A stretch of 63,531 bases of DNA, filler included, from Choristocarpus tenellus KU-1152 (Eukaryota > Protista > Phaeophyceae), in NCBI GenBank assembly GCA_964200185.2. It is 6 parts of 6 records of this genome, joined end to end, with 100 filler letters (N's around TTAATTAATTAA, not from the genome) between each part and the next. Parts side by side here need not be neighbours in the genome. Positions count along the whole stretch, not along the records: positions 1 to 26,122 come from CAXNAD020000172.1; 5 more parts are not named here. One strand, 5' to 3'. The position numbers and the translations under genes are program-made. Each line of letters opens with the position of its first letter. Positions within the stretch are counted from its first letter, which is position 1. Below are positions 12,901 to 15,900 of the stretch, one piece after another. The notes under the pieces are model-generated. The model saw only the letters and a list, made by a program, of their open reading frames with translations. It ran no database searches and was not told the DNA's origin.

Positions 12901-15900
12901 GCAGCAACGTCTGCATCACTCCACCACTCTCTTCCTACTCCCTCTCTTCGAAAGGCTTGACCCCTGCGAAGTTCATACCACATTGTCAATTGGGGTTAGG
13001 GTTAGGGTTAGGGTTAGGGACGAGGAAAGCACTCGAGGTAAAGTGAACATAGTGCAATCGATGCAGTAGCAGAGTGAAATGGGACAGGAACGCATCAGTG
13101 TGTGAGAGAAGAAGCACATCACAGTGACATTGAAAAACAAAGGAGAGACGAGTACTAGCCCTAACCCTAATACATCACAGTGACAATGTAGCACAAAGGG
13201 GAGACAAGTACTAGCCCTAACCCTAACCCTAAGTATTATCAAACACATACACAAAATAAAAGAATTCAAGTCCATGTTGTATCATTAGTAATAAAGGAAA
13301 AAGAACGGCGTACGCTGCGTGCTGGCATGGGTTAGGGTTAGGGTTAGGGTTAGGGGAGGAGTATCACACGGCACCCAACACGAAAAAAGAAGATAGAGCT
13401 AGTATATAAAAAAATGAAATACAAAAACCCCCCACAGTAATGTTTGCTAGTCAAATAATTGGGACTATTACGTACAAGAGGCGGTACACAAAGGGTTAGG
13501 GTTAGGGTTAGGACTACCCTTTCTTGGGTGTTGATTTGGTCAGCCTATAGTCATTTTTCCTGAAAATTCTGGTCAGACCAATCCAGCGCATGATATAGCC
13601 GTTTGACAACCAAATCCTGCCCCCTCTCCCACTTGAGAGTGGGAGACATACCTGGTGTGCATCCTTCTCAACAGCATCTTGTTCACAGCACCCAGTTCGC
13701 TGTCCAGAGCACCAAGACGAATCTTATCTGGTAGGCGCGCCAATCTTTAGATATAGGGGTTAGGGTTAGGGTTAGGGTTAAGGTTAAGGTTAGCCAAGCC
13801 AACAAAGAAAAAAAAAAGGTGAGAGTTTAGGAACGCCTTCTTATGCTTTGGAGAAACTACATCTAAACCAACCCTCCAAGCCCTAACCCTAACCCTATTG
13901 GAAACATAAGTTAGGGTTAGGGTTAGTTGTGATAGTGGCACGGTGTATGATATATATAGGGTTAGGGTTATACATTTTTTTTCTTTTTTACTGCCAAGAA
14001 TTCTAGATGCATTACCATACTGATTTGTCATTTATCGATTTTATCAGGGCACAAAAAGCCAAAATCGCGAAATTTTCAGCTGGTGAAGAGTGCAAAAGCC
14101 TAACCCCAAGTTTCCAAACGTGCTCTTAAATGTCCTGAGTAAAACAAACACTACTACAAGTGTCATCTCACAGATATCGGCTAAAACATCCAGATTTGAA
14201 AAAGAGGTGGGGATAGGTTGTGCAAATGGTAAAAAGGTGCATGGGAAATTACACAAAAAATCTTTCAAATACAAAAACAACCTTACTGTAGAAAGTGAGT
14301 CAAGAGGCTGCATTCACTTTCCATCCTCAACATATCAATATTGTAACCTTGATCATACCCTTTTCAATTTAATCACTACAAAATATAATATTAGAAACAA
14401 CAAGATATGTACCGTATGTATATATATATATATATATAACCCTAACCCTAAGATATGTACCAATGAACACTACATGAACACTGATCAAGACTGCATCAAC
14501 AAACAAGAAAGCGTAACTCAAGTTGCTCAGGTAACTCTAGATAACACCTCATGCTTGTCTTAGGGTTATATCCTACAGATACTGTACTCAGACAACACAA
14601 GGGCATATAAGGCATTTCGACAGTGTGTGTCTAAGATCAATGCCTTAACCCTAACCCTAAACCATATAAAGCATTTCGACAGTGTGTGTCTAAGATCAAC
14701 GCCTTAACCCTAACCCTAAGATCAATGCCTTAACCCTAACCCTAACCCTAAACCATATTAAGCATTTCGACAGTGTGTGTCTAAGCTCAATGCCTTAACC
14801 TTAACCCTAACCCTAAGATCAATGCCCAGGAGAAGGGTGACACAACTACATCTTCCCCACATTTCCATTCCACTCTCAAGTGAAATTGCACCTTGTTGTG
14901 CTGGATATAAAGGATACTGCTTCTGACACTGATGGTGGATAATGTGTAAGTCTACTACTGTGCATCATCAGTACCAATTACCCCAACCCTAACCCTACCA
15001 TGAAAGTAGTCCAAACAAAGAGAGACATAAATCACAGCACTCTACAATCGTGGCCCTCTCTCTGACCCTAACCCTAACCCTAACCCTAACCCTGACCTGA
15101 AGCTGAGATCGGTAAGAGATCGCACAAAGTCCGTGTCATCCTGGCAGTAGTTAAGCCGCTGGAACCGTAGCTGTGTTGGAAGCATCTCCCCATTAGAGGT
15201 GGCTAGACGGTAGTCCTGCAGGTAAGGGTAAGGGTTAGGGTTAGTCCTGCAGGTAAAGTGGTAAAGTGGAAGGACGTAAGCATGATGTAATAACCCTAAC
15301 CCTAACCCCCCCCAAAAAAAAAAATCCACAGCAGCAAACTTCATACGTAAGGGTTAGGGTTAGGGTACAAATTTGAACATTATACGTAATGCTTTGGGTT
15401 AGGGTTAGGGCACAAATTTGGCACGTATCGTCTAATGCAAAAAAAGACTGCTCGCAGTAGTTGTTCCGTATCTTGGTTAGGGTTAGGGTTAGCATGAGTA
15501 TAAAAAGAGGTGGCATTGAGGGCATTCCTTGTCTTGGTCTATGGAAAGAGAAGGCGATAGCAAACCCTAACCCTAACCATCGAGCAAGCATCGTGCGAAC
15601 TGCGCAAGCTTCAGTAAGTGCCACAATGCGAAAAAAGTATGGATGATTCAAGGGTTAGGGCCAGGGTAGGTGCTAATCCTCAACTGTAAACTGTAAGTGC
15701 ATTCCTAGGCAGTACTGAGGAGCAGGAACTGCCACCCTTGAGTACTAGGTACAAGACTCAAGGTTCAGTTTAGACAATACACCTACGTTAACAAATAATG
15801 TACTACTTCACAGAGTATTTCCAAACCTCTCCCTAACCCTAACCCAAGTTGTTTGGGGTAAGAATTGGACTGAACCCTAACCCTAAGTGTGCAGAAGGGT

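Follow-up and report, generated by a model that had tools for sequence, protein, structure and literature searches.

In this study we describe a duplicated 3' splice site with a short interstitial telomeric sequence (ITS) between its two copies, found in a 63,531-nt stretch of DNA from Choristocarpus tenellus KU-1152 (GenBank assembly GCA_964200185.2), which consists of six joined parts and is called the window throughout. The part dealt with here (positions 1 to 26,122, from record CAXNAD020000172.1) is filled almost entirely by one minus-strand gene of the PI4KB/PIK1 type (925-22056), present once in the assembly and with its frame kept through all 15 exons, and the duplication lies at the end of its third intron. 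On the minus strand exon 3 occupies 17843-18007 (165 nt, set by a transcript contig, phase 0), intron 3 15216-17842 (2627 nt, GTGGGT...CTGCAG, with 21 ITS) and exon 4 15097-15215 (119 nt, entered in phase 0).

Domain content and collinearity identify the host gene as that of a phosphatidylinositol 4-kinase. Comparison of stop-free pieces with Pfam gave PF00454 (PI3_PI4_kinase) in exons 10-13 and a weak match to PF21245 (PI4KB-PIK1_PIK) in exon 2, and the frame of exon 10, searched against 1.8 billion representative proteins, retrieved full-length homologs named PI4KB or 1-phosphatidylinositol 4-kinase. With P0016 and P0017 as tblastn queries 15 collinear exons were obtained, from 22056 to 925, all of which keep the frame with GT/GC-AG borders; exons were searched singly and their borders are partly set by homology. 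That there is one copy of the gene follows from exons 4 and 10, each of which finds this locus and no other in the 164-Mb assembly. An essential role is expected of the product. Of the named relatives the nearest are Discosporangium mesarthrocarpum, with 78% in exon 10, and Chrysoparadoxa australica, which makes the source an ochrophyte that belongs to the early-branching brown algae or stands beside them. No Rfam family was matched in the window, and the frame of exon 4 had no relevant match among PDB sequences. The locus of P0013 (L027), which belongs to another assembly, is a partial copy without introns and was therefore rejected as an intron comparator.

The 15-mer TAGTCCTGCAGGTAA occurs exactly twice in the window by sequence search, at 15211-15225 and 15242-15256 (family D9 of the repeat search, spacing 31), and no third copy was found there even with 2 mismatches allowed (0.09 expected by chance). 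The 16 nt separating both copies, GGGTAAGGGTTAGGGT at 15226-15241, are a degenerate TTAGGG run, that is, a few telomeric hexamers at an internal site of intron 3 with 15 kb of contig to either side; in the sequence of the site, telomeric runs are absent beyond the two 15-mers. Read on the minus strand, the site is ...CTTTACCTGCAG|GACTA-ACCCTAACCCTTACCC-TTACCTGCAG|GACTACCG, where the intron end before the distal acceptor appears as ...CACTTTACCTGCAG|GACTA, followed by the filler ACCCTAACCCTTACCC. The duplicated segment of 15 bp comprises the last 10 intron bases, AG included, and the first 5 exon bases. In the exon-proximal copy (15211-15225, minus strand) these are the functional AG at 15217-15216 and positions 15215-15211 of exon 4, while the distal copy (15242-15256, minus strand) carries its AG at 15248-15247 and still has the original pyrimidine tract attached, thus forming a decoy acceptor. 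The filler (15226-15241, minus strand), one unit of which is degenerate, provides two CTAAC motifs, with the A at 15241 and 15235, either carrying them or completing them with the preceding CT. Its junctions are partly in telomeric register (TAG at the right one, GGTAA at the left one), and an exact flanking repeat of at least 11 nt has a chance of about 1e-4 per site. A 17-nt segment made of filler and flank, GTAAGGGTTAGGGTTAG at 15228-15244, is identical to a neighbouring ITS at 15347-15363 (repeat family D6); the TAAGGG start is rare, occurring in 3 of the roughly 100 ITS in the window. A preliminary description of this DNA had claimed both the 15-mer pair with its telomeric bridge and the minus-strand reading of the site, and the sequence bears them out, with exact coordinates and a pair unique in the window.

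The question of which acceptor is used was addressed with contigs of four public runs aligned to 12300-18200. Run X3 is RNA-like, its coverage being confined to exons, and its record 17 (2530 nt, depth 59) aligns as 18007-17842, 15214-15108, 13745-13651 and 12962-12715 with zero mismatches and no letters between the pieces, thereby joining 17842/3 to 15214/5. By the GT-AG rule intron 3 runs from 17842 to 15216 and exon 4 starts at G15215; therefore it is the exon-proximal AG that is used. As exon 3 ends on a codon boundary, the distal AG would give GAC TAA, at the head of 31 extra nucleotides, and the proximal AG is in frame. Homology found by tblastn reaches the very start of exon 4. The exon-proximal AG is thus the functional 3' splice site of the mature RNA, with frame and exon start conserved. 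This agrees with the preliminary description, which had taken the site for a true acceptor of a real minus-strand exon (now backed by the transcript contig and by homology to P0016, P0017 and the related alga L028), the downstream AG for productive and in frame (X3 contig, phase 0, the same junction in L028) and the upstream one for a source of an immediate stop (frame from exon 3). A 31-nt GT-AG mini-intron that can be read on the plus strand (CAG|GTAAGG...CTGCAG|GTAA) was rejected, because gene and transcript are both on the minus strand.

Another repeated acceptor adjoins exon 3, at the end of the preceding intron. It is a 24-nt minisatellite of 8 copies without ITS (18004-18190), each unit of which repeats the exon-3 acceptor and the first four exon bases (TTCACAG|ATAA). 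Its units are in frame and stop-free, so that splicing to a copy further upstream would lengthen the product by 8-residue repeats; in the transcript contig it is the final copy, adjoining the exon (18007), that is spliced.

The duplication is also present outside the assembly, in an independent Logan contig of run X1 (860 nt) that covers 15108-15967 with no differences, although X1 may be the sample from which the assembly itself was made. As to raw reads lacking the duplication, which the preliminary description had named as evidence to the contrary, the X1-derived contig places the duplication in the reads of that run, with the same reserve as to its sample. An unduplicated allele was not found in the assembly by genome search, and the flanks of the insertion are unique there. 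In run X1, one contig each diverges at most positions of 15256-15275 and of 15326-15336, at about half the local depth. A search for the source of the contig diverging at 15256-15275 found none; such contigs may represent other ITS loci or a second allele.

For comparison with the orthologous intron, as had been proposed, L028 (a 20.8-kb contig) was used, which holds the whole gene in the same 15-exon layout with 1 ITS in 18 kb. Its exon 3/4 junction is the same, with a single acceptor (...tcgtgcag|AGTTAT) and no ITS, and the residues there are FKN|SY against FRN|DY here; intron 3 is too diverged for base-by-base alignment. The ancestral state would accordingly be one acceptor, ...CACTTTACCTGCAG|GACTACCG. 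That introns 3, 4 and 6 were gained through telomere-healed breaks was rejected, as the ITS-poor ortholog has introns at the same positions. The Chrysoparadoxa locus and L028 have essentially no ITS, and intron positions in Chrysoparadoxa differ from those here. This species is known for an intron burst of its own. Brown-algal introns are mostly ancient (bioRxiv 10.1101/2024.02.19.579948). In the Discosporangium locus (L024) 16.7 kb contain 19 ITS, none of them at a position found here, hence the process is ongoing in both lineages.

The setting of the duplication is a dense field of ITS. We counted 101 blocks of 9-29 nt in both orientations in 26 kb, roughly one ITS per 260 bp, with about 100 of them in the introns of the gene, and a scan for telomeric 12-mers with 1 mismatch gave 133 hits in the window where 0.09 were expected. 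Twenty random 10-kb stretches of the genome contained 41 blocks in 194 kb, which makes the gene about 18 times richer. Exact (TTAGGG)3 has 6354 hits in the genome, clustered on some contigs, compared with 6 for the reversed control; on contigs C30, C37 and C67 it forms clusters in both orientations over 10-20 kb, and ITS hotspots seem to be a genome-wide feature. One sampled stretch, L004 (G000 C1:1-10000, from the longest contig), has 27% GC and no ITS, the rest of the sample having 39-50% GC, and could be organellar DNA or that of a symbiont or contaminant. Only one of the roughly 100 ITS, a 10-mer, is exonic, though exons make up 9% of the gene.

Near acceptors the orientation of these blocks is biased. 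On the sense RNA the ratio of C-strand to G-strand ITS is 6:0 in the last 70 nt of introns versus 36:57 elsewhere (Fisher p = 0.005), in the first 70 nt it is 4 G to 1 C, and Discosporangium adds two more C-strand ITS just before acceptors. Introns 3, 4 and 6 have ITS at both ends, a G-strand one at 2-24 nt from the donor and a C-strand one at 10-15 nt from the acceptor, giving inverted pairs at 17826-17842 and 15226-15244 (intron 3), 15065-15096 and 13757-13780 (intron 4) and 12678-12693 and 10896-10908 (intron 6). For intron 3 the G-strand member (17826-17840) lies 2 nt after the donor and the inserted C-strand ITS stands 15 nt before the acceptor. The donor of exon 4, CAG|GTCAGGG, leads directly into a 29-nt G-strand ITS, and the two ends of intron 4 are predicted to be able to pair over about 29 bp. 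Such a bias could reflect selection, and it could also reflect a preference of telomerase for G/T-rich 3' ends, as offered by the antisense of a pyrimidine tract and by the sense strand of a 5' splice site. The hotspot and its orientation near splice sites are more unusual than the acceptor duplication itself, and no report of either was found in the literature searched.

The repeat/ITS/repeat design recurs in four more cases with repeats of 11-18 nt, in the same genome and in Discosporangium. A second event is in intron 2 of the same gene (19030-19081, no strand assigned), where an 18-nt direct repeat, AGTACATAAGTATGTAAC, flanks a 16-nt degenerate telomeric filler and the junction GTTA (at 19064) is in register with the telomeric repeat. 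The others are in a random stretch of the own genome (L007, 11-nt repeat) and at two sites of Discosporangium L024 (11-nt and 15-nt repeats, the first of them 11 nt upstream of the exon-9 acceptor). That a break at the exon boundary was healed by telomeric addition together with duplication, as the preliminary description proposed, is consistent with the repeat/filler/repeat structure, with the class of events known from mammals and with this recurrence; a telomeric insertion with target-site duplication, a new instance of that class, is well supported. The same description called the site a snapshot. The event itself stands, while its singularity does not, for the gene contains about 100 ITS and the genome thousands.

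Two other origins were set aside. Simple doubling in tandem of a 31-nt unit was rejected, and so was slippage from one ITS to another, as there is no ITS outside the 15-mers. A transposon or Introner was rejected because nothing but 16 nt of telomeric repeat was inserted, between genome-unique flanks.

We consider that the whole is probably best explained by an origin in which the ITS entered a break with a 15-bp target-site duplication and the proximal acceptor came to work via the insert. The break would have struck intron 3 right across its 3' splice site, and staggered ends or filled-in overhangs would have left 15 bp on both sides of the 16-nt filler. The likeliest source of the filler would be telomerase, extending a 3' end that terminates in GGTAA on the antisense strand. 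Two complete acceptors 31 nt apart would be the outcome, the distal one a decoy that introduces a stop, and the event would be one survivor of heavy local bombardment with ITS. The insert itself would make a good 3' splice-site region, being pyrimidine-rich with CTAAC motifs placed 19 and 25 nt before the AG in use. Motif and distance are as had been described: in GACTAAC the A at 15241 is 25 nt from G15216, that of the second CTAAC (15235) is at 19 nt, and pyrimidines follow. CTNAC-like motifs lie 16-30 nt before acceptors of L028, which supports the idea of a branch site in the insert. From these motifs and distances it is plausible, and we propose it tentatively, that the CTAAC of the insert supplied the branch point and so rescued splicing.

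Several observations weigh against this account. Most ITS here have no flanking duplication, and flanking repeats of at least 8 nt were found at 13 ITS versus 7.4 in a control from the same region, not clearly above it, so that target-site duplication is unsupported as a general property of the ITS in this DNA. The first filler unit is GGGTAA and not GGGTTA, which bears on the presumed telomerase step, and the identical 17-nt ITS 120 nt away is a possible template. Asymmetry of flank register was tried as a signature of telomerase and is uninformative, because both flanks show the in-register excess alike (about 35-40% versus 25%, all ITS). The empty ancestral site is read from the repeat and from a diverged ortholog rather than from a close relative. 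Assembled contigs drop rare isoforms, and use of the distal AG could have escaped for that reason. The minimum-energy fold pairs both CTAACs, which disfavours their use as branch sites should that helix form. The orientation statistics cover a single gene with its 14 introns, and some of the exon borders were placed by homology. To these are to be added hidden decoy use, the older CTTTAC motifs and the minisatellite at exon 3, each of which belongs to one of the rival explanations that follow.

Among the latter the one that survives best, though we think it rather improbable, is that both acceptors are used and the distal isoform (+31 nt, GAC TAA) is removed by nonsense-mediated decay (NMD), in which case the allele would be mildly deleterious and not rescued. 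The distal copy retains the whole original pyrimidine tract and a CTTAC 30 nt upstream, and as contigs drop rare variants NMD could hide decoy use; on the other side, the productive form must dominate in a single-copy gene whose product is expected to be essential. We see a smaller chance that telomerase had no part in the filler and that an ITS nearby served as its template, through replication template switching or through synthesis-dependent repair, with the duplication made in the same process. The identity of GTAAGGGTTAGGGTTAG with 15347-15363, including the rare TAAGGG start, speaks for copying, as does the abundance of small local duplications, among them ITS-bearing minisatellites of 26-59 nt. 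The extra GGGTAA unit would require a second slip, however, and the same design at unrelated loci and in another species fits a general, enzyme-driven process as in mammals. We doubt to a comparable degree that an old branch site is still in use, or that exon definition favours the AG abutting the exon, with the insert tolerated and not needed. Two CTTTAC motifs precede the distal AG by 7 and 15 nt, which is too close for it, and the proximal AG by 38 and 46 nt, and in the minisatellite of 8 exon-3 acceptors, which has no ITS, the copy adjoining the exon is likewise the one used; yet CTTTAC is a weaker match than CTAAC to the CTNAC-like motifs of L028, and 38-46 nt is at the long end of the distance.

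Still less probable, in our opinion, is the explanation that RNA structure sets the choice. A neighbouring ITS, G-rich on the sense RNA (15291-15308, minus strand), is predicted to pair with the inserted C-rich ITS and to bury the distal AG, so that the spliceosome would pass it and take the next free AG. Structural masking of proximal AGs is known from 3' splice-site selection in yeast. The minus-strand fold of 15195-15325 has a predicted energy of -41.2 kcal/mol (z = -3.7), a stability that none of 200 shuffled sequences reached, and in it the helix is extended by GUCCU/AGGAC, with the distal AG inside and the proximal AG unpaired. Against this, the fold is an in-silico one, the 21 ITS of both orientations in intron 3 offer many competing pairings, and the old CTTAC branch candidate lies within the predicted hairpin. 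An artefact of assembly or amplification, a chimeric join at telomeric repeats, is very improbable: short-read graphs do break at ITS and aligning contigs gives many false joints between them, but the 860-nt Logan contig crosses the site without differences, the exon order is backed by the transcript contig and the flanks are genome-unique.

Beyond the single site, a wider reading can be offered only as speculation, and taken whole it is improbable: that the lineage of this genome and Discosporangium underwent massive, clustered addition of ITS at internal breaks, followed by their co-option as modular splice signals. Just before acceptors, C-strand copies would then provide both the pyrimidine tract and a CTAAC branch site, G-strand copies 2-24 nt after donors would provide donor positions +4 to +6, and inverted pairs would zip the ends of the long introns 3, 4 and 6. 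If co-option were true, the duplicated acceptor would be signal replacement caught in the act. The locus is a natural experiment in 3' splice-site choice, with identical acceptors 31 nt apart of which the cell uses the one behind telomeric DNA. Its setting may outweigh the single event, since some 100 telomeric insertions in one gene and thousands clustered genome-wide point to very active break healing in an early-branching, brown-alga-like lineage. It offers material to ask how far selection, and how far the substrate choice of telomerase, decides which ITS survive, and whether ITS are reused as branch sites or clamps of intron ends.

Some features of the gene and its surroundings deserve mention in their own right. 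The ITS cluster (1599-20792) coincides with the PI4KB transcription unit, while 20800-26122, comprising the promoter region and a plus-strand JmjC_2-like gene from about 22794, has a single ITS 9-mer; the PI4KB-JmjC_2 neighbourhood is common to Chrysoparadoxa (L002), with a different orientation. Minisatellites with an ITS in each unit occur at 7992-8274 (36-nt unit), 13116-13226 (56 nt), 14604-14745 (59/26 nt) and 18407-18569 (49 nt) and look like amplified repeat/ITS/repeat designs. In Discosporangium (L024 4831-4850) the donor after exon 13 reads AG|GTTAGGGCTT, a 5' splice site resembling a telomeric unit. The first bases of introns 9-12 (7273, 5534, 4682 and 3597, minus strand) are apparent GC donors in four introns running (AG|GCAAGG, AG|GCGAGG, AG|GCAAGA and AG|GCAAGC), which is unusual because brown-algal splice sites are reported to be overwhelmingly GT-AG. 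Discosporangium has the GC donor in common at two of these, introns 9 and 12, whereas in L028 the single one belongs to intron 13.

Parts of this arrangement resemble systems already known. Pairing of intron ends through repeats, or masking of an AG by structure, has been described for 3' splice sites of yeast and for zebrafish introns with AC/GT repeats. Introns 3, 4 and 6 likewise have complementary repeats near their ends, which could draw these together, and a local helix could hide the decoy AG; what differs is that the pairing here is computational and has many partners, and that the repeats are telomeric, recent and not conserved. Insertions of Introners or transposons in algal genes have in common with this one a short target-site duplication and an insert that would partly supply splice signals. 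In contrast to them, the 16-nt insert lacks an element body, has neither terminal inverted repeats nor a family consensus, and gave rise to no intron. Tandem or duplicated 3' splice sites, and the AGGT models of splice-site origin by Rogers-type tandem duplication, are closer in outcome, as a copied splice-site dinucleotide gives two competing sites, one of them productive. In our case foreign telomeric filler separates the copies, one site is seen in use, and no new intron arose, intron 3 being ancient and common to L028. The closest counterpart is provided by short ITS of mammals at double-strand breaks (Nergadze et al. 2004/2007; PMC2246262), which share with the present site the few telomeric hexamers, the non-terminal position and the short direct duplication of the target. 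Among mammalian ITS loci the duplication class amounts to 4.6% in rodents and 16% in primates, and microhomology in register with the repeat implicates telomerase (PMC2246262). In this DNA, too, few ITS belong to the duplication subclass (about 5 of some 130 isolated ITS seen), and bases in register with the repeat stand at a junction (TAG at this site, GTTA at 19064). The present case differs in that its host is a stramenopile alga, the participation of telomerase is presumed, the local density of ITS is far higher, and the insertion fell on a splice acceptor and in doing so created two.

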